DNA from: Macrostomum lignano
Taxonomy: Eukaryota
Direction of reading: 5' to 3'
NCBI GenBank assembly: GCA_002269645.1
Contig: NIVC01002379.1
Location: 1 to 64,000 of the forward strand
DNA length: 64,000 nucleotides
Position 1 is the first letter of the stretch, and every line of letters begins with the position of its first letter. The notes beneath the pieces are model-generated. The model saw only the letters and a program-made list of their open reading frames with translations. It did not search any database and was not told the origin of the DNA. Shown piece by piece: positions 10,328 through 63,225 of this stretch. Both the position numbers and the translations under genes were made by a program.

Positions 10328-11368
10328 ATGGCGTCATTCCAGCAGCCATTCACCATGCAGCTGATCACAGCTGATGGCGTGTCACTGCTGCCAGCTCACA
10401 CTATCATTACTAGTGCTCCTGCCGACTTTCTCCGCAAAGATGGCCAACCAATTCAAGTGACAACAACCTCTGGCGGCTATGCTCAGGCAATTGAGGTCAA
10501 GCCTGGCCAAGTCCTGTCTGGCCAAGTACTATCTGGCCAAATTCTGTCTGGCCAGATGCTTCCAAGCCAGATGCTATCTGGCCAAGTCCTGCCTGGCCAA
10601 GTGCTGAGTGGCCAGATGCCTCTGACAGCTGGGTCGCGCGATTTTTTTGGCCAGGCTGGCCAGCACGTGAAGCTGCAAGCTTTGCCGCATTCCTTCATCA
10701 TACCGACTGCTCAGCTACTGCCCCAGCAGAAGGTGGAAGCTCAGCAGCCTGGTGTGCCGCAGCAGCAGGCGGCCCATCATCAGCAGCATCAGCAGCCGCA
10801 GCAGTGGGTCAAGACTGAGCCCGGCGGTGCTGTCGTGGCTGTTCCGATGCCCCAGCAGCAGCTGCAGCAGCAACAGGCTCAGCCAGCCGGAGGCTTGCCC
10901 TGCACCACCTGCGGCAAGATTGTGGCTGACGCGGCTAAGCTCAAGCGGCACATGGCGACGCACACGGCGGAGGCGGCCGCTTCAGCTGGCGCATTTCCCT
11001 GCGAACACTGCGGCAAAGCCTTCGGCTCCAGCTACAGGCTGCGGCGGCACGCCGTCATTCACAGCGACGCCAAGCCGTACACCTGCCCGACCTGCCACAA
11101 GGCCTTCAGCCGGTCCTACAGCCTCACCACCCATATCAAGATCCACAGCGGCACCAAGGACCATCGCTGCAGTTATTGCGACAAGGCCTACGCCAGGTCC
11201 GACCACCTGCGCCGGCATATCCTGCACGCCCACACGCCGGGCGGCGCGCCGGCCACGCATCGGCCGCCGGCGGCCAAGAATTTTATGTGCCCAGTGTGCG
11301 GCAAGGCCTTCTCCGACTCGTCGCACCTGCGCCGGCACATGCGGACCCATCCGGGCCAGACCGTCTGA
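10328..11368 (+). CDS. C2H2 zinc-finger transcription factor, 5 fingers, Q-rich N-terminus, single coding exon, 346 aa
   Basis: CxxC..HxxxH(x)H fingers (CTTC, CEHC, CPTC, CSYC, CPVC) with SDAKPY and SGTKDH linkers. GC-rich codons flanked by AT-rich DNA. Confidence 0.93.
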   Translation: MASFQQPFTMQLITADGVSLLPAHTIITSAPADFLRKDGQPIQVTTTSGGYAQAIEVKPGQVLSGQVLSGQILSGQMLPSQMLSGQVLPGQVLSGQMPLTAGSRDFFGQAGQHVKLQALPHSFIIPTAQLLPQQKVEAQQPGVPQQQAAHHQQHQQPQQWVKTEPGGAVVAVPMPQQQLQQQQAQPAGGLPCTTCGKIVADAAKLKRHMATHTAEAAASAGAFPCEHCGKAFGSSYRLRRHAVIHSDAKPYTCPTCHKAFSRSYSLTTHIKIHSGTKDHRCSYCDKAYARSDHLRRHILHAHTPGGAPATHRPPAAKNFMCPVCGKAFSDSSHLRRHMRTHPGQTV

Positions 11369-16547: not shown

Positions 16548-19500
16548 ATGCTAGAATTTCTAATTCCTCTGACCCTTGCCTGTCTGGCGGCCTACTGGTA
16601 TTTCACCTGGAACCGGTGTCTGCCTCCTGGTCCAACCGGTTTGCCCCTGGTCGGCGTCGCACCCTGGCTGGCAGTCAGTGAGTCACTTTCAACGGAGTTT
16701 TACCAGCGTATTAGCAATTCGTAGCAAACTATCTCTGGAAGAATCAGTTTAAAAGAGATAAGGAGCAAGTGTAGTTCCATGCGCCAGAAATCATCAATTG
16801 CATAAATGTATAGGTATTCGAATTGTCAAGTTTACAAGTTTGACAGGGTTAATCTCAAGTCGGGGGATTTAGTTTGAATGCCAAGCACATGACTGCCGGG
16901 CTCCGTCGGGCTTCATTCGAGGACGAACCAGATAAAATTACACGTACCTTAACAAGGCGAATGACTTAAAAAAACATTACAGAACGCCGCGATCACTACT
17001 TCACCGAGCTCGCGAAGCAATACGGAGATATTTTTACAGTTCGAGTCGGATTCTTCTACATTGTGGTGCTAAACTCAGCGGAGGCTATCAAGGAGGCATT
17101 TGCCAGAAACGAGCACATCGCTGGCAGGGGTCTGCGCGCATTCACCAAGTTTCTGTCCGATGGAAAAGGTTCGTGTCATATCACAGAAGAATAAACCATC
17201 TGCACCTCGATCCTTAAAATACCTATCCATTTCGATCTTAGACACTAAGTGGCAATGCTACCACTTCAACCCACCCCAATCCTTAGACACCAAACCACAC
17301 CGATCCTTAGACACCAAACCTGATCCTGATCCTTAGATACCAAACCACACCGATCCTCAAGCATCAATCCTCCTGAATCTTCAGACACCAAACAACACCG
17401 ATCCTACGAAACCAAATCACACCGATACTTCGACACCAAACCCTCCCGATCCTTAGAGACCAAACCATCCCGATCCTTAGACACCAAACAACACTGATCC
17501 TACAACACTAACTACGCCGATCCTACGACACCAAACCACACCGATCCTACGACACCAATTAACACCGAACCTTTGACGCCAAGCCAACTCGATCTTCAAG
17601 CATCGAACCCACCTTGATCCTCAGACACCAACCCACCAACATATTGAAGCAGCCCGGTCACTATCCAACTTCCGCCAACGTAGCAGCAAACCACCCGATT
17701 TCTCCGTCAGGCATCGCCTCCGCTGAGGGTGTCCGCCACCGAGAGCAGCGCCGCTATTGCCTGCGCGTGCTGCGCGACTTTGGCTTCGGCCGGATCAACT
17801 TCGAAGGCGCCATCATCGAGGAAGCAGGCAGACTTGCCGACTCAATCCGGGCCAATGGCTCCGCCCAGCCAATTCGCATCGACGGCCGTCTTTCGCAGGC
17901 GATCGCGAATGTCATCGGGCGCATAGTCTATGGCCGCAGGTTCGAGTACAACTCCACCGAGCTGCACCGGATGGTTTCCGCCCTGCACGAGTTGAACTCG
18001 GCGCCTGGAGGCGTCCTGCTGTTGAACACGACGAGCTTGCTGGACCCTCTGGCCGATTGGCTGGGCGTGGGGAAGCTTAAAGCCGCCCGGGATGGCATCC
18101 GGGACCTACTGGAGCCCATCGTAGCCGAGCACCAGGCCGACCTGGACGAACTTGACGAGGATGGCCTGACCGATTTTCTCTACGCCTATCTTGCGGAGCA
18201 GAAGCGGCACCGCAGCCTGCCCGACGCCGACATATGGGATGGTCTGTCGGGGTGCAGTCTGACGGGACGGGTCTGTCATGATAGTCCTGACACGCTAAAT
18301 CACGATTAGTCTGTCCGGGCTATGATCTGGCTGGATTATGATCTGTCAGGACTAGACCGAACGATCTGTCAGGACTATGATCAGTCGGGACTATAGTCTG
18401 TTAGGATTATTTCTGTCAGAGTTCATTATGTTAGTAATATCTACCAGGACTAGTCTAGGTGGCGGTTCTTTATTGCCGAAAAAGCTATTTCGACGAGCGT
18501 ATTATTTAAAAAAATGCATTCACTGTTTTAAGGGTACCAAAACCAACTACTTGCAGTAGCCACTGATACGGACACAAGCTTAAAATCGTTCGAACACTGC
18601 AATCGCATTTCCCAGACCGGCAGATGATGGAGGTGCTGATCGACCTGATGGTGGCGGGCTCGGATACCACCCGGTCGACGCTGGTGTGGGCCATCAACCT
18701 GTTGAGCGGCAGCCAGCCAGTGCAAGAGGCGGTGCGCCAGGAGCTGGCCAGCGCTGTCGGCGATGCCCGACCGCCGTCGACTAGCGATCTGCCGCGGCTG
18801 CCGCGACTTGACGCCGTCATCCAGGAAGTGCTCAGGTTCGAATTTGGAGCTTTAACTGAAGACACAGTATTTCCATATTAGTAGAGTGGTGGATTGATTG
18901 ATTGACTGACTGACAGAATGATGGACTGATAGAGAGATAGCTTGATAGGTTCACAGACTGTGAACATACATATTGATATATTGATAAATTGATAGATTGA
19001 TTCACAGATAAATTTAGCTAGATGGTATAGATAGAAGATACGAGTAGATAGAAGTCTAAGCTTGGCAAATCCGATATGAAGTCATTTAAACCGTTTTGCA
19101 GAATTTCTGCCCTGGTTCCGACGGCGGTGCCGCACTGCTGCACATCGGACACAGAGCTGCGTGGTTACCAGCTGCCGTTGGGCACAATGGTCATGGCCAA
19201 CACACACTGCCTGACCAGAGATGCTGATGTGTTTGCTAACCCAGATCAGTTCGACCCGTTCGGACACTTTCTGACTGTTGGCGATGAAGGCAGTGGCCAG
19301 CTGCAGGTGGTCAATAAGGACAAGATCTTACCGTTTAGCTACGGTGATTAAAATTTATTTAACGTTTCGATAGCACAAGAGATTGGAATAGATTTACTAT
19401 AATGCACCATACTGAAAAGAATAAAAATGATGAGCCAGTATAAGTTACTCGAACGCTTCGCAAGAAATGCAGTTACAAACTCGGAACTGGAAGTCAACAT

Positions 19501-20211: not shown

Positions 20212-28650
<8,439 letters not shown>

Positions 28651-34082: not shown

Positions 34083-36645
34083 GGGTCATTGAGACATTGG
34101 GTCACTGATCATGAGACACTGGGTCATTGAGACAGTGGGTCATTAACACATTGGGTCACTGATCATGAGACACTGGGTCATTGAGACAGTGGGTCATTAA
34201 CACATTGGGTCACTGATCATGAGACACTGGGTCATTGAGACAGTGGGTCATTAACACATTGGGTCACTGATCATGAGACACTGGGTCATTGAGACAGTGG
34301 GTCATTAACACATTGGGTCACTGATCATGAGACACTGGGTCATTAAGACAGTGGGTCATTAACACATTGGGTCACTGATCATGAGACACTGGGTCATTGA
34401 GACAGTGGGTCATTGAGACATTGGGTCACTGATCATGAGACACTGGGTCATTGAGACATTGGGTCACTGATCATGAGACACTGGGTCATTGAGACAGTGG
34501 GTCATTAACACATTGGGTCACTGATCATGAGACACTGGGTCATTGAGACAGTGGGTCATTAACACATTGGGTCACTGATCATGAGACACTGGGTCATTGA
34601 GACAGTGGGTCATTAACACATTGGGTCACTGATCATGAGACACTGGGTCATTAAGACAGTGGGTCATTAACACATTGGGTCACTGATCATGAGACACTGG
34701 GTCATTAAGACAGTGGGTCATTAACACATTGGGTCACTGATCATGAGACACTGGGTCATTGAGACAGTGGGTCATTAACACATTGGGTCACTGATCATGA
34801 GACACTGGGTCATTGAGACAGTGGGTCATTAACACATTGGGTCACTGATCATGAGACACTGGGTCATTGAGACAGTGGGTCATTAACACATTGGGTCACT
34901 GATCATGAGACACTGGGTCATTGAGACAGTGGGTCATTAACACATTGGGTCACTGATCATGAGACACTGGGTCATTGAGACAGTGGGTCATTGAGACATT
35001 GGGTCACTGATCATGAGACACTGGGTCATTGAGACAGTGGGTCATTAACACATTGGGTCACTGATCATGAGACACTGGGTCATTGAGACAGTGGGTCATT
35101 AACACATTGGGTCACTGATCATGAGACACTGGGTCATTGAGACAGTGGGTCATTAACACATTGGGTCACTGATCATGAGACACTGGGTCATTGAGACAGT
35201 GGGTCATTAACACATTGGGTCACTGATCATGAGACACTGGGTCATTGAGACAGTGGGTCATTAACACATTGGGTCACTGATCATGAGACACTGGGTCATT
35301 GAGACAGTGGGTCATTAACACATTGGGTCACTGATCATGAGACACTGGGTCATTGAGACAGTGGGTCATTAAGACATTGGGTCACTGATCATGAGACACT
35401 GGGTCATTGAGACAGTGGGTCATTAACACATTGGGTCACTGATCATGAGACACTGGGTCATTGAGACAGTGGGTCATTAACACATTGGGTCACTGATCAT
35501 GAGACACTGGGTCATTGAGACAGTGGGTCATTAACACATTGGGTCACTGATCATGAGACACTGGGTCATTGAGACAGTGGGTCATTAACACATTGGGTCA
35601 CTGATCATGAGACACTGGGTCATTGAGACAGTGGGTCATTAACACATTGGGTCACTGATCATGAGACACTGGGTCATTGAGACATTGGGTCATTAACACA
35701 TTGGGTCACTGATCATGAGACACTGGGTCATTGAGACAGTGGGTCATTAACACATTGGGTCACTGATCATGAGACACTGGGTCATTGAGACAGTGGGTCA
35801 TTAACACATTGGGTCACTGATCATGAGACACTGGGTCATTGAGACAGTGGGTCATTAACACATTGGGTCACTGATCATGAGACACTGGGTCATTGAGACA
35901 GTGGGTCATTGAGACATTGGGTCACTGATCATGAGACACTGGGTCATTGAGACAGTGGGTCATTAACACATTGGGTCACTGATCATGAGACACTGGGTCA
36001 TTGAGACAGTGGGTCATTAACACATTGGGTCACTGATCATGAGACACTGGGTCATTGAGACAGTGGGTCATTAACACATTGGGTCACTGATCATGAGACA
36101 CTGGGTCATTGAGACAGTGGGTCATTAACACATTGGGTCACTGATCATGAGACACTGGGTCATTGAGACAGTGGGTCATTAACACATTGGGTCACTGATC
36201 ATGAGACACTGGGTCATTGAGACAGTGGGTCATTAACACATTGGGTCACTGATCATGAGACACTGGGTCATTGAGACAGTGGGTCATTGAGACATTGGGT
36301 CACTGATCATGAGACACTGGGTCATTGAGACAGTGGGTCATTAACACATTGGGTCACTGATCATGAGACACTGGGTCATTGAGACAGTGGGTCATTAACA
36401 CATTGGGTCACTGATCATGAGACACTGGGTCATTGAGACAGTGGGTCATTAACACATTGGGTCACTGATCATGAGACACTGGGTCATTGAGACAGTGGGT
36501 CATTAACACATTGGGTCACTGATCATGAGACACTGGGTCATTGAGACAGTGGGTCATTAACACATTGGGTCACTGATCATGAGACACTGGGTCATTGAGA
36601 CATTGGGTCACTGATCATGAGACACTGGGTCATTGAGACATTTTG
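34083..36645. repeat. 54-bp higher-order satellite (three 16-bp subunits plus GATCAT), ~2.55 kb
   Basis: Unit GAGACACTGGGTCATT-GAGACAGTGGGTCATT-AACACATTGGGTCACT-GATCAT, ~47 copies, very homogeneous. Confidence 0.97.
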
Positions 36646-37214
36646 TTATTGAGACATTCGAATTATCGAGACGACACGCTCTAATTTTACTGCAGAAATT
36701 TCATCGCATATTGCTTCGATGACGAACAAGCTTATCAAAATAAAATAGAAAGCATTTTTTTAAATACGCTCGTAGAAAACGTTTTAAAATCCTGATAGCT
36801 GGCGTGCCTCATGCAGAGAATCCTCCTTGATTGAGACAGACGGACGCACAGAGGAGAGACATAAGGCAGAAAATCCTGGTGCATGCGCAGGGAGCTCTGC
36901 ACTTGAACAGCTTGCAGAGTATTAAAGACCAACTCCCCCCCTCCGCCTTCCACGAACCCATGGCCGCTGCCCCTCGCCGTGTTTACCAACCCGATAGCGG
37001 AAACCCAGCGTCACGCTCGGAGCCCAGAGCTGCCCATAGATGGCGGTGCCGCGATCGGGGGAGGGGGGGGGGTTGCAGGCCTCTCTCAGGACCGCAGCTG
37101 ACTGAGAGAAATGGCTTGGCCTGACCGATCAAATTCTGAACTCTGTGGCGCCTACAGCACGACAGCTTTTCCTTTGTTCTCTTCTACCCTCCTATCCCTG
37201 TCTACTTTACCATT

Positions 37215-37830
37215 CTCCTCTCTCTCCTCTCTCTCTCTCAGTCCCTCTCCTTCTCCTCTCTCTCCTCTGTCTCAGTCCCTCTCCTTCTCCTCTCTCTCCT
37301 CTGTCTCAGTCCCTCTCCTTCTCCTCTCTCTCCTCTGTCTCAGTCCCTCTCCTTCTCCTCTCTCTCCTCTCTCTCTCTCAGTCCCTCTCCTTCTCCTCTC
37401 TCTCTCTCAGTCCCTCTCCTTCTCCTCTCTCTCCTCTCTCTCTCTCAGTCCCTCTCCTTCTCCTCTCTCTCCTCTCTCTCAGTCCCTCTCCTTCTCCTCT
37501 CTCTCCTCTGTCTCAGTCCCTCTCCTTCTCCTCTCTCTCCTCTCTCTCTCTCAGTCCCTCTCCTTCTCCTCTCTCTCTCTCAGTCCCTCTCCTTCTCCTC
37601 TCTCTCCTCTCTCTCAGTCCCTCTCCTTCTCCTCTCTCTCCTCTGTCTCAGTCCCTCTCCTTCTCCTCTCTCTCCTCTCTCTCAGTCCCTCTCCTTCCCC
37701 TCTCTCTCCTCTCTATCAGTCCCTCTCCTTCCCCTCTCTCTCCTCTCTCTCAGTCCCTCTCCTTCTCCTCTCTCTCCTCTCTCTCAGTCCCTCTCCTTCT
37801 CCTCTCTCTCCTCTGTCTCACTCCCTCTCC
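37215..37830. repeat. CT-rich minisatellite CAGTCCCTCTCCTTCTCCT(CT)n
   Basis: Visible period with variable CT length. Confidence 0.93.
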
Positions 37831-38089
37831 TATCCCCCCAATCTCTCTCCTCCCTTTTAGTAGTTCACATTTGCTGCTCGCCATTTACCCTGGCAGGGCT
37901 AAAGCAGGTCACCAGGCTCTCCTATTGGTTCCGTTGTATTGGCAGGAATTTGCAATCAGGCTACAGCGAAACAAGCTCGGGACCAATTAGGGCTACGTTG
38001 GATTCTGTGAAACAATAAAAGGAAGCGGATGCAGGACCGGGCAACTGCACCATTCTGAGAGGATTGACCCAGCCGCACAGCATCCAGAC

Positions 38090-38931
38090 ATGCCGTTCAC
38101 TCCTAGCCACCGCCTGTGCACCCTGCTGCTCTGCCTCGCTGTTCTCAGCGGCAGCTCGACCGGCTTCCTGCTGCTCAAGGAGGCTTCATCGGCCACTACT
38201 GATTCCTTGACTACCCGGGCGGTGGAGGCGGCCGCTATGGCCGAGGCCTTCGCTGAAGCCGCTGAACTGGCAGCTGTTGAAGCCAAATCGGCAACCGCTG
38301 AAGCCGCCGCCGCAGCTTCTGCAGAGAATTCCGTGGCCGAGCCAGCCCAGCGAATGCCGGTTGCCAAGCGGATGACTGGCAGCAACTTGGACGCTTTGAA
38401 GGCGAGGCTCATCGGGCGCGGCTACCTGCCTCCGGGCGCCTCCGACGAGGAACTGGCCCGGCTCGTCCGAAATCTGATTGACGTTTATAGCAGGCGCCGG
38501 TGAGCCTCCCACATTTGTCGCCTGCCTGTGATCCCAATTAGCACACCTATCTCACCTGCTTGTTATCATATAATAAATAATTAGCACACCTCTCTCACCT
38601 GCCTGTTATCATATAATAAATAATTAGCACACCTCTCTCACCTGCCTGTTATCATACAATATAATAATTAGCACACCTCTCTCACCTGCCTGTTATCATA
38701 TAATAAATAATTAGCACCCCTCTTTCATCTGCCTGTTATCATATAATAAATAATTAGCACACCTCTCTCACCTGCCTGTTATCATACAATATAATGATTA
38801 GCACACCTCTCTCACCTGCCTGTTACCATACAATATAATAATTAGCACACCTCTCTCACCTACCTATTATCATATAATAATTAGTACACATTTTACATAC
38901 ATTGCATTGCAGAGTGGGCCGCCGACGATAG
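38090..38931 (+). CDS. Neuropeptide precursor, NPY/NPF-like, amidated C-terminus ...YSRRRV-GRRR*
   Basis: Signal-peptide-like N-terminus, Ala/Glu-rich spacer, KR site. Donor CG|GTGAGC at 38499/38500 and acceptor TTGCAG| at 38912. Exon 2 (38913-38931) reads A GTG GGC CGC CGA CGA TAG. Secreted peptide precursor is well supported; the family assignment is inference. Confidence 0.8.
38535..38885. repeat. 43-bp minisatellite filling the neuropeptide intron
   Basis: Unit AATTAGCACACCTCTCTCACCTGCCTGTTATCATATAATAAAT, ~8 copies. Confidence 0.93.
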
Positions 38932-39421
38932 GCCAAAACCAAGAAGTCAACGAGAGAACAACATGTCAAAGCTGACCAAATTATAATTCGGTACCAGCCC
39001 AGTTACTCTTGAAAGTGTTGCGCTACAAAGTAAAGAGACGGCTGTGCACTAAAAACTTTATCGCATTAATGTTTCAGTAAAACAAAAAATACAATTAGAG
39101 AATGAGCTGACTGAAAATAGAAGAACAGCTTGGGTTATTTCTGTGCCAAGTCAGTAAGAACTGAAGTAGAACCCACCCCCCCCCCCCCCCCCAACCAAGG
39201 AGAAGCACGGACACTGTCAATGCGCTGTCAATGCAACAAGCGTCTGTCGTATGAAATCAATAAACGGAGCTCTGATTAAAAATACGTTGTTGAGAAATAG
39301 GAAATTTTCCGCAAGTTTAATTTCTTTTAAGAGTAAAGTTTTTGAGCAGATTTTTTATTTACATATGTCAGTTTAGTGAGCTGAGCGTCCAAAAGCAGAT
39401 TCCAAAGAACAGATTTATTCC

Positions 39422-41290
39422 AGAGAGTAGATTCCAGAAAGTAGACTCAGGTGAGCAGATCCTGCAGAGTAGATTCCAGAGAGTAGACTCAGGTGAGCAG
39501 ATCCTGCAGAGTAGATTCCAGAAAGTAGACTCAGGTGAGCAGATCCTGCAGAGTAGATTCCAGAGAGTAGACTCAGGTGAGCAGATCACGCAGAGTAGAT
39601 TCCAGAGAGTAGACTCAGGTGAGCAGATCCTGCAGAGTAGATTCCAGAGAGTAGACTCAAGGTGAGCAGATCACGCAGAGTAGATTCCAGAGAGTAGACT
39701 CAGGTGAGCAGATCCTGCAGAGTAGATTCCAGAGAGTAGACTACGGTGAGCAGATCCTGCAGAGTAGATTCCAGAGAGTAGACTCAAGGTGAGCAGATCA
39801 CGCAGAGTAGATTCCAGAGAGTAGACTCAGGTGAGCAGATCCTGCAGAGTAGATTCCAGAGAGTAGACTACGGTGAGCAGATCCTGCAGAGTAGATTCCA
39901 GAGAGTAGACTACGGTGAGCAGATCCTGCAGAGTAGATTCCAGAGAGTAGACTCAAGGTGAGCAGATCCTGCAGAGTAGATTCCAGAGAGTAGACTCAAG
40001 GTGAGCAGATCACGCAGAGTAGATTCCAGAGAGTAGACTACGGTGAGCAGATCCTGCAGAGTAGATTCCAGAGAGTAGACTACGGTGAGCAGATCCTGCA
40101 GAGTAGATTCCAGAGAGTAGACTACGGTGAGCAGATCCTGCAGAGTAGATTCCAGAGAGTAGACTCAAGGTGAGCAGATCACGCAGAGTAGATTCCAGAG
40201 AGTAGACTCAAGGTGAGCAGATCACGCAGAGTAGATTCCAGAGAGTAGACTACGGTGAGCAGATCCTGCAGAGTAGATTCCAGAGAGTAGACTCAAGGTG
40301 AGCAGATCACGCAGAGTAGATTCCAGAGAGTAGACTCAGGTGAGCAGATCCTGCAGAGTAGATTCCAGAGAGTAGACTACGGTGAGCAGATCCTGCAGAG
40401 TAGATTCCAGAGAGTAGACTCAAGGTGAGCAGATCACGCAGAGTAGATTCCAGAGAGTAGACTCAGGTGAGCAGATCCTGCAGAGTAGATTCCAGAGAGT
40501 AGACTACGGTGAGCAGATCCTGCAGAGTAGATTCCAGAGAGTAGACTCAAAGTGAGCAGATCACGCAGAGTAGATTCCAGAGAGCAGACTCAGGTGAGCA
40601 GATCCTGCAGAGTAGATTCCAGAGAGTAGACTACGGTGAGCAGATCCTGCAGAGTAGATTCCAGAGAGTAGACTACGGTGAGCAGATCCTGCAGAGTAGA
40701 TTCCAGAGAGTAGACTACGGTGAGCAGATCCTGCAGAGTAGATTCCAGAGAGTAGACTCAAGGTGAGCAGATCACGCAGAGTAGATTCCAGAGAGTAGAC
40801 TACGGTGAGCAGATCCTGCAGAGTAGATTCCAGAGAGTAGACTACGGTGAGCAGATCCTGCAGAGTAGATTCCAGAGAGTAGACTCAAGGTGAGCAGATC
40901 CTGCAGAGTAGATTCCAGAGAGTAGACTCAAGGTGAGCAGATCACGCAGAGTAGATTCCAGAGAGTAGACTCAGGTGAGCAGATCCTGCAGAGTAGATTC
41001 CAGAGAGTAGACTCAAGGTGAGCAGATCACGCAGAGTAGATTCCAGAGAGTAGACTCAGGTGAGCAGATCCTGCAGAGTAGATTCCAGAGAGTAGACTCA
41101 GGTGAGCAGATCCTGCAGAGTAGATTCCAGAGAGTAGACTCAAGGTGAGCAGATCCTGCAGAGTAGACTCAGGTGAGCAGATCCCGCAGAGTAGATTCCA
41201 GAGAGTAGACTCAAGGTGAGCAAATCACGCAGAGTAGACTCAGGTGAGCAGATCCCGCAGAGTAGATTCCAGAGAGTAGACTCAGGAGAG
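39422..41290. repeat. 42/43-bp satellite GAGTAGACTCAGGTGAGCAGATCCTGCAGAGTAGATTCCAGA, ~1.9 kb
   Basis: Visible period, ~44 copies in a few interleaved variants (CTCAGG, CTCAAGG, CTACGG; CCTG, CACG). Confidence 0.97.
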
Positions 41291-41859
41291 CAGATTCAGT
41301 AGATTAGATTGTTGTCGAGCAGAATGCGATGAAAGTAGTTGTAAAAGAAGGTCAGACAATAATTATTCGATGGCCAAAACACTCATCTGATTTAAACAAT
41401 CTTCAAAAGCAGTTGCCGTATCAAAGGGAACTGACACTGAGTGATCGTGTCTGTTGGGCTCGGGGCTAATCCGGCCAGGTGATTATAGAGACCATTAAAG
41501 ACTCGTGTTTAACCCTCAGATAGTCAAAGCTCTGTTAATTTCATGAAAACAACGCCCCCAGATTGAAAGGAGGCTTCAGGGCCCGCTAATTGTTTTAGCA
41601 CCTTCGGGAGAGCTTTGATTATGCTGAAAGCAGCAGCAATCTGCTTTCTGTCCGGAATTCATTGCCGTGTCTCTCGCGCTCCGCTTCTGTTCTGCATAAG
41701 CCGCCTCGCACTTGCTCCGTGAGTCCTCACTGATCCGCTCTTGCTTACGGACTCTCATCTCTTTCATCCTGATCCCCTCAACTCTGACCCCATAACCTCG
41801 CTCTACTTTACACAAATATTCTCTGTGTAGCTCTACTTTGATCAAATCTCAATACCCAA

Positions 41860-42660
41860 ATCTACCCTACCCGATTTTACTCTACCCAAGTCTACTCTGC
41901 AAAACTTTACTCTACCCGAGTCTACTCTACCCTAATCTACTCTACCCGACTCTACCTCTACCCGAATCTACTCTACCCTAATCTACTCTACCCGACTCTA
42001 CCTCTACCCGAATCTACTCTACCCTAATCTACTCTACCCGACTCTACTCTACCCGACTCTACCCGACTCTACTCTACCCGAATCTACTCTACCCTAATCT
42101 ACTCTACCCGACTCTACTCTACCCGACTCTACTCTACCCGACTCTACTCTACCCGGCTCTACTCTACCCGACTCTACTCTAACTGACTCTACTCTACCCG
42201 ACTCTACTCTACCCGACTCTACTCTACCCGACTCTACTCTACCCGACTCTACTCTACCCGAATCTACTCTACCCGACTCTACTCTACCCGACTCTACTCT
42301 AACCGACTCTACTCTACCCGACTCTACTCTACCCGACTCTACTCTACCCGACTCTACTCTACCCGACTCTACTCTACCCGAATCTACTCTACCCGACTCT
42401 ACTCTACCCGAATCTACTCTACCCGACTCTACTCTACCCGAATCTACTCTACCCGACTCTACCTCTACCCTAATCTACTCTACCCTAATCTACTCTACCC
42501 TAATCTACTCTACTTGACTCTACTCTGCCTGACTCTACTCTACTCAAATATACTCTACAAGACTCTACTCCAATTGGCCCTACCCTAATCGAATCTACTC
42601 TGCTTGACTATACTCTACCGGCTATACTCTACTTGACTTGACTCTACTTTACCCGACTAG
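41860..42660. repeat. (CTCTA)-based 15-bp minisatellite ACTCTACTCTACCCG
   Basis: Visible period with degenerate flanks. Confidence 0.93.
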
Positions 42661-43520: not shown

Positions 43521-43726
43521 TGAGCTGTCTTGTCTTGATACAATTTAATAGTTATGCTTTATCACAACGAGAAAAGTATCCAAGTCAAATTTTCGCAAGC
43601 AAACGGCTCTGTGCCACAGACAGTTTCTATAGCTATTAATATATTTTTTCCCCTAATCTGATAAAATTATAATGAACGCAAATACATAGAGAAGATACAC
43701 TCGGAAAATTCAATAGAAAGGCCGTC

Positions 43727-46700
43727 ATGTCTGAGGAAGGATTTTACTTGGTGATGCTAGCTAAGAGAGACGCGGCAGAGACAGCCCTGTGGCAGTGCTA
43801 CAACCAGCTGTTCACCAATCTGGGCTACTTCAACAAGCACCAGGTCACCATAGACGGCAAAAGCGTGCCGCTGACGCAGGAGACGATGGCAACAACAGTT
43901 GACGGGCATGTGACCAAGGGAAACAGGGACGGGTTCTTTATTTTTCGTCAGCACTTTATACACGTGTTTGAGGATGGCAGCCTCATGCTGCAGCTCATCA
44001 AGGATGCGTGCACTGCGCTGGAGAAACCAATGGGCCAACTGAATGACAAGTGAGAATGAGTTCTTTATGATTTTTGACGCAACTAAAGCATCTCACCGCC
44101 CTAACCTCCATTCTCTCGTTGTCTTTCTCACTTACATGTATATTTTCCCAGTCTGTCAGTTTGCAGATCACACTCATGATTTTGACATCAAACCTCCTCT
44201 CTCACCTCTCTCACCTCTCTCTCACTCTCTCACCTCTCTCTCTCACTCTCTCTCACCTCTCTCACTCTCTCACCTCTCTCTCACCTCTCTCTCACCTCTC
44301 TCATCTCTCTCACCTCTCTCTCACCTCTCTCATCTCTCTCACCTCTCTCTCACCTCTCTCATCTCTCTCACCTCTCTCTCTCTCTCTCTCACCTCTCTCA
44401 CCTCTCTCTCTCACCTCTCTCACCTCTCTCTCACCTCTCTCATCTCTCTCTCACCTCTCTCACCTCTCTCTCACCTCTCTCATCTCTCTCACCTCTCTCA
44501 CCTCTCTCTCACCTCTCTCTCACCTCTCTCTCACCTCTCTCTCACCTCTCTCTCACCTCTCTCTCACCTCTCTCTCACCTCTCTCATCTCTCTCACCTCT
44601 CTCTCACCTCTCTCATCTCTCTCACCTCTCTCACCTCTCTCTCTCACCTCTCTCTCTCTCTCACCTCTCTCACCTCTCTCTCTCACCTCTCTCACCTCTC
44701 TCTCATCTCTCTTACCCCTCTCTCACATCTCTCAGATATTATTCTGACTTCTCTAGCCGCTCCTAGACTCGCTTATTCATGTCTTCCCATTACCGGATGT
44801 CATTCTGCCGTGATCTCACTTTAACAATAAAACCAAGCCTTATAGAGCTTTCACCACTCAGCTGATTGTCCCTGAATTCTCTCCCTCACACACACACTCG
44901 CACATCCCACTGCTTCCACCCGTCTCTCCATCTCCACTTCAGTCTTGCACTTAGCTCTCAATTTTAGTCTCGCTTCAGTACGTCATGCAGTTAATTTGAT
45001 TGGCCTTCACTATAAAAATAATTAGCACAAAAGTATGCTAAATTCGCAGTGAATAGCACCCTTGCATTAAGGCCGCCTCACTAAATATTGTGTTGAATTG
45101 ACAGTCCCATATTCTTAATAAAAATGGTTTATATGCAATGAATTCCTCGGCAATGCCTAAAAAGTCCCATTCGAAATAGCTAACGAAGCAATGGTTCTCG
45201 TTATTATTACCTCGCATCAGTTGTATTTTTATTATAATTAAAGCGTATTGCATATTGCATCAGTCAAACGAGCGTTTGCTTGTTCAGAGTGTCTTTCTAG
45301 AAAGAACATGTCAGTATTGTTGTGACGCCTGTTCTGTCGTGAAGACCGTTATGTCAGGTGGCCGTTCTGTCAGATGGCCGTTCTGTCAGTTGGCCGTTCT
45401 GTCAGATGGCCGTTCTGTCAGTTGGCCCTTCTGTCAGATGGCCGTTCTGTCAGGTGGCCGTTCTGTCAGTTGGCCGTTCTGTCAAATGGCCGTTCTGTCA
45501 GATGGCCGTTCTGTCAGTTGGCCGTTCTGTCAGATGGCCGTTCTGTCAGTTGGCCCTTCTGTCAGGTGGCCGTTCTGTCAGTTGGCCGTTCTGTCAGATG
45601 GCCGTTCTGTCAGGTGGCCGTTCTGTCAGTTGGCCGTTCTGTCAAATGGCCGTTCTGTCAGATGGCCGTTCTGTCAGGTGGCCGTTCTGTCAGGTGGCAG
45701 TTCTGTCAGGTGGCCGTTCTGTCAAATGGCCGTTCTGTCAGGTGGCAGTTCTGTCAGGTGGCCGTTCTTTCAAATGGCCGTTCTGTCAGGTGGCCGTTCT
45801 TTCAAATTGCCGTTCTGTCAGGTGGCCGTTCTGTCAGGTGGCCGTTCTGTCAGGTGGCCGTTCTGTCAGTTGGCCGTTCTGTCAAATGGCCGTTCTGTCA
45901 GATGGCCGTTCTGTCAGGTGGCCGTTCTGTCAGATGGCCGGTTTGTCAGGTGGCCGTTTTAGCGTTGCTGGCGTGAAATAAATCATTTAAACAAAAGCTA
46001 CTACAATTTTTAATAAAAACTGCCGCGTATTCATGTTGGAATCGGCATTGGAACGTATTTGCGACTCGACTCTTTACTTGCTACTTACTTGAGTAGCTAG
46101 AAAAGATTCCACTGAAACAGAGAACAGCGGAATCGCTTATTTTGTTTCTTGTAAAGGTGTGATCATCTCGGATATCAAGCACGGAGGTCGCATTGACTGT
46201 TTTTCACCGTTGGCAGCGGAACTTTCACCCCGATGAACAATTTAGACTTGTCTTTAAAATTATTTAATCCTCAGCAACCTTTAGCAATCTCTGCTATTGA
46301 CTGGCTAGGATGGCTCATATAGCACTCTTGGTCTTGGTAGGTTTAATCTGACATGTACTAACTAATCAACTGCAAACTATCCATTGCCAGACAGGCGGCC
46401 TTCGCTTCTAAGAGCAACCCGCTGCTGCGCACAGTATACTGGTACATCGACAAGCACTTCATCACTCAGCTGCCGCCAGCTCAACAGGCTTCGTTCACCG
46501 TAGACTGTCTGATGTTTGGAGAATGGGAGTGCAAGAGCTTCAATCTCATCGGCATGCACCTGGTTGCGCTGGCCTGCATGCTGGAAGCGAAGGAGCTCGC
46601 CACATTCCTACCGCCGGAGGCTGCCAAGCATGCAGCGGTGGTCAATCCGTACTTTAAAGGCTTCCTGGCGAAGAAGGCGATCACATTGTCCATCAGTTTC

Positions 46701-47635: not shown

Positions 47636-48667
47636 TCACAGTGCTCCCCCCGAGTCGTTTTTGCTTCCACTAGCCCCGCTTCCATCTCCGTCACCGCCTC
47701 CGCCGCCCAGCGACACTCTCGATGGAACCCTAGACGGCATGCTCGCGTTGAGCATAGCGACGAACTCGGCATAGTCGATGCAACCGTCGCCGTTGATGTC
47801 GACCTCTCGGAGCATTTCTTCCACCTCAGCGTCCTCGTACTCGTGGCCGAGGCCGTCTAGTACGGCCTTCAGCTCCGGTGCTGATATATAACCGTTGCGG
47901 TCCTTGTCAAACACGTGGAACGCAGCCAGCAGTTCGTCCTCTGAGTCGTCGGCGTGCGTCTGATCCACCTGGTGCTGCTTTTTGCCGGCGCGCTTCCTCG
48001 GGTCGGACTTCATCAGCTGGATGAACTCCTCGAACTCGATAGTCCCGTTGCCGTCCTTGTCAATGCGACGGAGCATATCCTATTGAGTTGTGTGGAATTT
48101 GGATCTACATATGATTGGAGACTGACTTCGATACGACTGCAGTTTTCTACCAGTGGTTCTATTCCAAATAATTCAATCACGGACTACATACCTACGAGTA
48201 TCGTTTCTTAAGTAGTATCCTTAAAAGCGAATTCTTTTACCTTTAATTGCTCAGTGCTTGGCGATCGACCAATGCATCGGAGAACTGTTCCCAGCTCCTC
48301 AGTAGTGATGCAGCCGTCTCCTAGGTAAATTATGGATTAATGGCTTGTTGACACATTTAATAGCCTCTAATTTCTTCTGATTAAGAGTAGCGAAGTCATT
48401 ACCAACCAATTACATTTCTTATCAACTTTTAATTGAGCTGAATTCTTTTGAGCCGATGATCACAAGGTTTGGGATTCGATGCGCTTTTCAGTAAAGAAAA
48501 TTGATTTCTCAAATCGAGGTCAAGCTTCATCAAGAGATCTTCTCACCGTCTTTATCGAACAGTTGGAAAGTTTCCTGAAAAATCTGCAGCTCAGAGGCGG
48601 TCACCATCAGACTGTCGTCTGACTCGTCCTTCGCTGATGACGAGGCCTGTTCATCCGAGGACATCAT
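47636..48667 (-). CDS. Calmodulin-like protein, 4 EF-hands, 3 coding exons, ~214 aa
   Basis: Exons 48667-48547, 48320-48241 and 48079-47636 (GT-AG, phases 1 and 0). Loops DKDGDGCITTEE, DKDGNGTIEFEE, DKDRNGYISAPE and DINGDGCIDYAE. An acceptor at ~48685 indicates an upstream exon or trans-splice site, so the start could lie further 5'. Confidence 0.9.
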
Positions 48668-62772: not shown

Positions 62773-63225
62773 TTACTGCGGTGGCATTGGTGGCGGGGGC
62801 GGCGTCGGCAGTGACAGGCGGTCAAGATCCCCTGTCGAACTCGCGGAATACACCTCGGCGGCTGCGGCAGTCTCGAGGCGGGCCACCCGGCGCTTGAGCT
62901 TGGCCTGGCCGGACCCGAACTCGGCCGTAAGCCGGGCCAGTCTAGCCTGCAGACAGCCGACATTGTCGGCCAGCCGAGCCAGCTGCTCTGCCTGTGTCTC
63001 CTGGGCCTCCTCGGCGCGTGCCACCGCAGCCTCATCTAGCAGATTGTCCTTCCGGAGCACGTCACGACCGCGCTGTACGAGTTTGTCGCGGGCTTCGGGG
63101 TACTCGTCTAGCGCCGCCCAGAGGTCCCGTTTGCTGAGGCAGAACAGGTCCGAATAGCCTTGGCTGCGTACGTTTGCGGTGCGCCGGTTGCCCGTCTTGT
63201 TGCCGGGGATGTTCAACAGGGACAC
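62773..63225 (-). CDS. Last coding exon of a cyclic-nucleotide-gated channel alpha subunit (CNGA-type); the rest lies beyond the window end
   Basis: Acceptor TTCCCAG| at 63226. VSLLNIPGNKTGNRRTANVRSQGYSDLFCLSK (CNBD), VLRKDNLLD (C-helix), and C-terminal leucine zipper LQARLARLTAEF..KLKRRVARLE. AATAAA ~45 nt after the stop. Confidence 0.92.
   Translation of the reverse strand: MSLLNIPGNKTGNRRTANVRSQGYSDLFCLSKRDLWAALDEYPEARDKLVQRGRDVLRKDNLLDEAAVARAEEAQETQAEQLARLADNVGCLQARLARLTAEFGSGQAKLKRRVARLETAAAAEVYSASSTGDLDRLSLPTPPPPPMPPQ

Follow-up and report, generated by a model that had tools for sequence, protein, structure and literature searches.

A two-exon gene of Macrostomum lignano predicted to encode an amidated peptide, possibly a strongly diverged member of the NPY/NPF superfamily

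Introduction

What is produced by the short gene located at positions 38090 to 38931 (+) of the DNA analyzed here, and does its product descend from the NPY/NPF peptide hormones? This DNA, hereafter called the window, is a stretch of 64,000 nt from the flatworm Macrostomum lignano (contig NIVC01002379.1, positions 1 to 64,000, forward strand), and its segment 35090..41931, which contains the gene, was found to be base-for-base the same as positions 35090-41931 of that contig in assembly GCA_002269645.1 (Mlig_3_7). An initial annotation of the window had joined an apparently orphan open reading frame (ORF) to a "hidden" micro-exon and proposed that the spliced product is a divergent NPY/NPF-like peptide with an RRRV-amide end. 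We report here that the two-exon gene is real and that its product is, with good confidence, a processed secreted peptide. The descent of this peptide from the NPY/NPF superfamily is suggested by the position of the intron and by a weak similarity to planarian NPYs, and we consider it somewhat probable.

Macrostomorpha branched off early among the flatworms, and transgenesis is established in the model species M. lignano. No description of M. lignano neuropeptides was found in the searchable literature.

Results

A 19-nt micro-exon completes the reading frame

The ORF located at 38090..38503 (+) encodes 137 amino acids and ends with AGC AGG CGC CGG TGA. Inspection of this end revealed a GT at 38500-38501, which generates the donor site CG^GTGAGC and places the end of exon 1 at 38499, in phase 2. 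The intron (38500..38912, +; 413 nt, GTGAGC...TTGCAG) splits the Arg137 codon, carries 8.0 copies of a 43-bp tandem repeat (38536..38880) and terminates at the acceptor ...CATTGCATTGCAG^A (38912/38913). Exon 2 starts at 38913 and its coding part is restricted to 19 nt (38913..38931, +), which provide the last base of Arg137 (A), Val138 (GTG), Gly139 (GGC, the predicted amide donor), Arg140-142 (CGC CGA CGA) and the TAG stop codon. The spliced reading CG+A GTG GGC CGC CGA CGA TAG thus corresponds to R-V-G-R-R-R-stop and the complete product to 142 amino acids. The donor, the micro-exon and the repeat-containing intron had been placed by the initial annotation with correct coordinates and arithmetic, in full agreement with the GenBank models, and the V-G-RRR-stop end that it had deduced is identical in the three gene copies described below.

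The 142-residue product is exactly that of GenBank entries PAA58391.1 and PAA63417.1 (BOX15_Mlig014097g2 and g3, P0010), where it is named "hypothetical protein" only. Since the GenBank models of M. lignano derive from a genome-guided RNA-seq transcriptome (StringTie/TACO/TransDecoder; PMC5730564), the junction 38499^38913 is supported by transcripts, independently of any peptide hypothesis, and this junction is common to the GenBank models g1, g2 and g3. Positions 38090..38931 are therefore a real two-exon gene. The micro-exon is not hidden, as had been claimed, being already present in these public coding sequences; it was missed only by older ab initio UniProt models (P0002-P0005, P0011 and P0012), which have other ends or are fused to an ORF located around 43.7 kb. 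The gene model is thus already public, and the NPY/NPF-like interpretation was found in no paper of the searchable literature.

We also translated the reading obtained from each AG dinucleotide in the 3 kb that follow the donor. An R-x-G-dibasic end was generated by only one of the 501 AG dinucleotides, the one preceding 38913. The acceptor at 38913 stands above chance, because it is the sole one yielding an amidation-type end and is also the annotated one.

The alternative C-termini found in P0002, P0003 and P0011 were rejected, as they come from the separate ORF at around 43.7 kb that was fused on by the ab initio models. This ORF (43725..44050, +; MSEEGFYLVMLAKRDAAETALWQCYNQ...) is joined in the three models to the donor of the peptide gene via an acceptor near 43688. 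It had no sequence match in the PDB, and the model fused with it is named 'SnoaL-like domain-containing' in UniRef.

The precursor resembles the prohormone of an amidated peptide

Residues 1-25 (MPFTPSHRLCTLLLCLAVLSGSSTG; 38090..38164, +) are predicted to form a classical signal peptide, with a positive n-region (H7 and R8), a hydrophobic core (LCTLLLCLAVL, mean Kyte-Doolittle value of 3.0) and a small polar c-region (SGSSTG), the exact cleavage point being uncertain. They are followed by an acidic Ala/Glu-rich spacer propeptide (residues 26-92; 38165..38365, +) with a net charge of about -6, and by a Lys-Arg pair (residues 93-94, AAG CGG; 38366..38371, +) which is a predicted prohormone-convertase site. 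The segment comprised between Lys93-Arg94 and Gly139-Arg140-142-stop is basic (pI 10.2) and 44 residues long, confirming the mature peptide of about 44 residues behind a long Ala/Glu-rich propeptide that had been proposed initially. Its exon-1 part would consist of residues 95-136 plus the first two bases of Arg137 (MTGSNLDALKARLIGRGYLPPGASDEELARLVRNLIDVYSRR + CG; 38372..38499, +). The sequence therefore contains the general features of a peptide precursor, which are a signal peptide, dibasic sites on both sides of the peptide and a Gly amide donor, and the predicted arrangement of signal peptide, acidic spacer, KR, 44-residue peptide and G-RRR-stop is the standard one for the prohormone of an amidated peptide.

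According to this layout, the signal peptide (approximately residues 1-25) would be removed and a prohormone convertase would cleave after Lys93-Arg94 and ahead of the terminal Arg140-142. A carboxypeptidase would then trim the terminal arginines and Gly139 would be consumed by the amidating enzyme, leaving the 44-residue peptide MTGSNLDALKARLIGRGYLPPGASDEELARLVRNLIDVYSRRRV-NH2 with an expected monoisotopic mass of 4909.69 Da. The RRR that precedes Val inside the peptide could be taken for a further cleavage site. However, the planarian peptide GAEFFIRRVV-amide has been seen by mass spectrometry, indicating that an RR ahead of Val survives processing in flatworms and that Val-amide ends exist. 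AlphaFold2 (AF2), used with the single sequence of the mature peptide, predicted a first helix (residues 5-16), a loop of eight residues and a second helix (residues 25-42), with a predicted local distance difference test (pLDDT) score of 90. The 44-mer may thus fold as a helix-loop-helix hairpin presenting its basic RRRV-amide tail. A Foldseek search of the PDB with this model found no match, and a PDB sequence search with the mature peptide gave chance-level matches only. We consider it quite probable that the gene product is processed and secreted. The amidated 44-mer would then be a secreted signal, probably acting on a G-protein-coupled receptor of the NPY/NPF type.

Three gene copies preserve the peptide

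In addition to g2 and g3, a third gene copy, g1 (P0001, locus L001), has an unchanged donor and an identical micro-exon. The copy number of the intronic 43-bp minisatellite varies between gene copies, g1 having about two more units and an intron of 498 nt, i.e. 85 nt longer than the 413 nt of the window. The flanks of L001 and of the window are 96.7-98.4% identical, which, together with the repeat variation, fits the recently duplicated chromosomes of M. lignano. Six nucleotide differences were found in exon 1 across the three copies, four synonymous and two non-synonymous (A32D and A57V), the latter both located in the spacer. The region of the mature peptide contains synonymous changes only and the ORF is intact in all three copies. 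These differences fit a constraint on the peptide; weighing against the proposed reading, the copies are too similar to demonstrate selection.

The locus could also be a functionless or very young transcribed gene in a repeat-rich region, giving no stable peptide. In line with this possibility, the gene is species-restricted, minisatellites flank and interrupt it, and no record of its expression or phenotype was found in the literature and two expression supplements. However, the ORF is intact in three copies whose mature-region changes are all synonymous, the processing signals form a complete and coherent set, and the amidation end is produced by a unique acceptor. We regard a functionless gene as very unlikely.

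Intron position and helix similarity point to an NPY/NPF ancestry

From vertebrates to flatworms, NPY/NPF genes are described as having an intron that splits the Arg codon of the terminal RF/RY after its second base (PMC7314547, PMC2953531), and this Arg-codon intron is present in 10 of the 11 planarian npy genes (PMC2953531). We examined three NPF genes belonging to three phyla, from a snail (L005), a cestode (L006) and a mite (L007), and all three have a phase-2 intron at ...RP^R/F. The only coding intron of the M. lignano peptide gene is likewise in phase 2 and inside the Arg codon ahead of the last residue, so that the parallel drawn by the initial annotation holds against both the published and the examined genes. 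For a single intron in a coding sequence of 142 codons, the chance of hitting the same codon in the same phase is about 1 in 400. In addition, the precursor contains a single predicted peptide of 44 residues, in keeping with the one peptide of about 30-46 residues per precursor of NPY/NPF, planarian NPY peptides having 29-46 residues.

Similarity at the protein level was detected when a gap of three residues was allowed. The gapped alignment (ASDEELARLVRNL, the gap, then IDVY) was positive against all 10 planarian NPYs tested, with a mean BLOSUM62 score of 16.6 compared to -6.4 without the gap. The best pairwise fit was obtained with NPY-4, in which RSDEDYVSYLRKVQKYIQLYGRPRF aligns with ASDEELARLVRNL, the three-residue gap and IDVYSRRRV. 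In a permutation test that included the gap search, 8 of 5000 shuffles reached the observed score. A hidden Markov model (HMM) of the planarian helices alone gave 4.9 bits to the peptide, a value reached by 27 of 5000 shuffles, and hhalign gave a P value of 2e-4 with a probability of just 47%. The similarity of the helix to planarian NPYs is thus weak, appears modestly above chance and needs the three-residue gap. As such a deletion would remove about one helical turn, the amphipathic face may be roughly kept.

The ungapped C-terminal alignment with human NPY, on which the initial annotation had relied, was rejected as evidence. Outside the last five residues (the terminal xRxRx), its score is reached by 1491 of 20000 shuffles and has no significance.

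Several observations weigh against membership in the family. None of the M. lignano copies (P0001-P0004) has a precomputed match to the Pfam profile PF00159 (Hormone_3), which is carried by most planarian NPYs, including NPY-11, and by all the mollusc and arthropod NPFs retrieved. The hhalign probability quoted above is low, and the 4.9 bits given by the helix HMM are below the scores of the weakest true members in a leave-one-out analysis (6.4 and 8.0 bits). With respect to the R-x-R-[F/Y]-amide signature, RxR and the amidation signal are present and the terminal aromatic residue is replaced by Val. Leu occupies both positions aligned with the conserved Tyr residues of flatworm NPFs (about -10 and -17), the sole Tyr near the end being at -6. 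AF2 predicted an alpha-helical N-terminal arm and not a polyproline one, the single PP pair being in the loop. No homologue beyond M. lignano was found with the full precursor in a word-indexed search of 5.8 billion proteins, and no informative one with the C-terminal 65 residues in an exhaustive phmmer search of 1.84 billion representatives; hence there is no conservation across species. A profile search with 10 planarian NPY peptides recovered planarian, mollusc and arthropod NPFs and no M. lignano NPF. The peptide also fits LEM-like repeats more strongly than NPYs, as described below, and the gene identifier Mlig014097 was found neither in the searchable literature nor in two expression supplements. 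As the aromatic amide, the conserved Tyr residues and the Pfam profile are all missing, the gene is not filed as a proven NPY/NPF member.

These deviations have to be read in the light of the planarian genes. The unusual features listed by the initial annotation are present, and several of them have a planarian precedent, such as the Leu-amide end of NPY-11 and the spacer and GKR end of NPY-10. The family thus already includes peptides with an aliphatic end, with a spacer and with no C-terminal flanking peptide.

The absence of any homologue detected outside M. lignano, the lack of a PF00159 match with a weak NPY similarity, and a long spacer with the peptide at the extreme C-terminus, unlike the usual NPY precursor, would also be expected from a lineage-specific orphan precursor of an amidated peptide, without kinship to NPY/NPF, in which the intron position and the RxR-aliphatic-amide end arose by coincidence or convergence. 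However, a chance of about 1 in 400 would have to be accepted for an intron codon and phase common to the three NPF genes checked and to nearly all planarian npy genes; moreover, the helix similarity survives permutation and each deviation has a planarian precedent. An orphan precursor is in our opinion unlikely. The proposal of a divergent NPY/NPF-like identity thus keeps its support from the intron and from the gapped helix similarity, with no PF00159 match, aromatic end or conserved Tyr in its favor, and descent from NPY/NPF, as a far-diverged member of a superfamily that is expanded in flatworms, is the reading we favor, with modest confidence.

The peptide resembles LEM/SAP helix-loop-helix domains

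A competitor that had not been envisaged in the initial annotation came from the exhaustive phmmer search, whose best matches outside Macrostomum are repeat proteins and include one with five LEM-like repeats (P0008, E value 2.6e-5), on which the Pfam LEM domain was confirmed. The M. lignano product could accordingly be a small unprocessed protein with a helix-extended-loop-helix (HeH, SAP/LEM-like) domain, its Arg-rich end being a plain basic tail. A profile built from the P0008 repeats gave 19.1 bits with the peptide, a score reached by none of 5000 shuffles, and hhalign of these repeats with the peptide gave a probability of 91% (P value 1e-6). The peptide shows the succession of a helix, an Arg-Gly-Tyr-x-Pro-Pro loop and a second helix that is typical of HeH modules. 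Moreover, automatic UniRef names of M. lignano proteins include 'LEM domain-containing' and 'SAP domain-containing', and the helix-loop-helix was confidently predicted by AF2 from the single sequence (pLDDT 90).

Several points argue against this interpretation. P0008 is the best of 1.8 billion sequences, its E value sums repeats that are not independent, and one domain of about 19 bits is insignificant at that scale. The same segment of the peptide also matches unrelated repeats, those of a PG-binding-like bacterial protein (P0009) and the 'TPRTAA...YLPPGASEEE' repeats of P0006 and P0007; these matches, to three unrelated repeat families in all, suggest a generic helix-cap motif, L-x-x-R-L-I-x-x-G-Y-x-P-P. 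Neither the LEM nor the SAP profile of Pfam is found on the M. lignano proteins. In the PDB, a sequence search with the peptide found no LEM or SAP chain even at an E value of 10, although a P0008 repeat finds LAP2, and Foldseek returned nothing. The signal sequence with its positive N-terminal flank would send the C-terminal domain into the secretory lumen rather than the nucleoplasm or cytosol, a location incompatible with nuclear BAF or DNA binding. Finally, the UniRef names of near-identical models are unreliable, as they also include 'SnoaL-like' and 'RxLR effector candidate'. An unprocessed HeH protein appears improbable, and the likeness to LEM/SAP domains, once these points are weighed, would rather be a resemblance at the level of the fold than a matter of homology or function.

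A variant that keeps both sets of data would be a mature peptide that is secreted, folds by itself and represents a mini-domain of LEM/SAP (HeH) type, either joined to an NPY-type gene or evolved inside it. We hold this variant to be improbable as well. If true, the polyproline arm would have become an alpha-helix and the aromatic amide a Val-amide; the structure of an NPY-family hormone would have been re-invented, and its receptor specificity would have diverged accordingly.

The four near-identical models P0001, P0004, P0011 and P0012 bear four automatic names in UniRef (LEM, SAP and SnoaL-like domain-containing, and RxLR effector candidate). Such discordance for one gene is a caution on automatic naming.

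Other amidated peptide families

Precursors of the CRH/urocortin/DH44 type begin with a signal peptide and a long propeptide, after which come a dibasic site and an amidated helical peptide of about 40 residues, often with a Val- or Ile-amide, followed by G-basic-stop. The layout of the M. lignano precursor and its Val-amide end are like those of this family. On the other hand, no CRH/DH44-family protein was recovered in either of the two protein database searches, which were general searches for homologues, and the NPY-type intron is not known to be a feature of CRH-family genes. A relationship with the flatworm RRVV-amide peptides NPP-18 and SPP-10 was also considered, such peptides existing in planarians; these are, however, repeated 10-mers with a GAEFF core which is absent from the M. 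lignano peptide. A peptide of either kind is very unlikely, and an origin from the NPY/NPF superfamily remains our preferred explanation.

Flanking elements and neighboring genes

A possible core promoter was noticed at 37983..38022 (+), with a CCAAT box at 37983-37987 and a TATA-like CAATAAAAGG at 38013-38022, about 70 nt 5' of the ATG. On the other side, the putative 3' untranslated region extends from 38932 to the first AATAAA (38932..39264, +; AATAAA at 39259-39264) and is followed by an ATTAAA at 39275, both hexamers being putative poly(A) signals.

The peptide gene lies in a unique island of about 1.6 kb between large minisatellite arrays. These are an array of 11 units of 54 bp (36000..36610), a CT-rich array of 18 units of 34 bp (37220..37831) which ends about 260 bp 5' of the ATG, and an array of at least 37 units of 42 bp (39424..41000+) which starts about 160 bp past the AATAAA. 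Much of the 64-kb window consists of minisatellite arrays, which create long spurious ORFs.

Exons of a DEG/ENaC channel gene are located 10-18 kb upstream of the peptide gene (20212..21363, + and 28150..28650, +). Among solved structures, the ORF at 20212..21363 is closest to FMRFamide-gated Na+ channels (E value 4.5e-9), and in the old model P0005 the peptide gene is fused with the product of the 28150..28650 ORF. The proximity of a channel of the peptide-gated type to a peptide gene is probably coincidental. Further along, a calmodulin-like EF-hand ORF (47636..48076, -) matches calmodulin chains with an E value of 8e-42 and carries a C-terminal tail rich in Gly, Asp and Ser, which calmodulin lacks. 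Three other ORFs were recognized by eye only: one that combines a Gln-rich N-terminus with C2H2 zinc fingers (10328..11368, +), a cytochrome-P450-like exon (17614..18309, +) and one whose product looks like the coiled-coil region at the C-terminus of a cyclic-nucleotide-gated channel (62773..63225, -). Rfam detected no RNA family anywhere in the window.

Discussion

If the M. lignano peptide is a derivative of NPY/NPF, the known range of the family would be widened to members that end in an aliphatic Val-amide, lack the conserved Tyr residues and have an N-terminal arm that is helical. In that case the Arg-codon intron would have outlived recognizable sequence similarity, and could become a practical marker for "orphan" neuropeptides. 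In planarians, the NPY-family peptide NPY-8 controls sexual maturation, and a divergent paralogue in a genetically tractable flatworm would therefore be directly testable by RNA interference, transgenesis and receptor pairing. Interest is tempered by the fact that atypical NPY paralogues are already known in planarians. Should the peptide not be a relative of NPY, it would be one more lineage-specific secreted peptide, which is ordinary.

Among the systems that can be compared to the M. lignano peptide, LEM/SAP domains share the pattern L-K/R-x-R-L-I-x-R-G-Y-x-P-P ... L-x-x-L and a predicted two-helix hairpin of about 40 residues. They are, however, intracellular or nuclear modules binding DNA or BAF, whereas in M. 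lignano the protein combines a signal peptide with prohormone signals. The planarian RRVV-amide peptides NPP-18 and SPP-10 have a similar basic C-terminus (RR-V...Val-amide) but are 10-mers present in two copies per precursor, with no similarity beyond the last residues. The genes of vertebrate NPY, PYY and PP (PP-fold, PF00159) also have the phase-2 Arg-codon intron, and these peptides, like that of M. lignano, combine an amphipathic C-terminal helix and a hairpin-like fold with an RxR-X end that is amidated; they differ by a polyproline N-terminal arm, a terminal Tyr, a length of 36 residues and a position directly after the signal peptide. Canonical flatworm NPFs (Arthurdendyus triangulatus NPF/Smed NPY-4 and Moniezia NPF) have their intron at the same place and also end in Y-[GS]-R-x-R-X-amide, but their last residue is Phe, their RPR contains a Pro, Tyr residues are present around -10 and -17, and the helix is free of the deletion.

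The likeness extends further with the planarian Schmidtea mediterranea, in which eleven npy genes have been described, npy-11 being 'atypical' while keeping the gene organization of the family (PMC2953531). NPY-10 and NPY-7, like the M. lignano precursor, have an N-terminal spacer before the NPY-like peptide, with a KR in NPY-10, and their precursors end at GKR or G without a flanking peptide. As npy-10 shares the intron and ends at GKR, a tiny last coding segment is implied in this gene too. Unlike in M. lignano, these spacers are short and not Ala/Glu-rich, and the peptides end with the canonical GRPRY-amide. NPY-11 (BK007021) is a single long amidated peptide of 46 residues, versus 44 in M. 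lignano, with an S-D-E motif that opens the helix in both peptides and an intron inside the Arg codon ahead of the last residue. Its end ...IVSRPRL-amide, to be compared with SRRRV, is of the same S-R-x-R-aliphatic-amide form and is the only known precedent without a terminal aromatic residue. NPY-11 differs from the M. lignano peptide in directly following the signal peptide, in having a C-terminal flanking peptide, and in its conserved Tyr and Pro-rich N-terminus. It is also matched by PF00159, whereas the M. lignano peptide is not and needs the three-residue gap to be aligned. The AF2 model of NPY-11 (pLDDT 50) was too poor for a comparison of folds. By analogy, the closest in kind to the M. 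lignano peptide would thus be NPY-11 for the C-terminal end and NPY-10 for the layout of the precursor.

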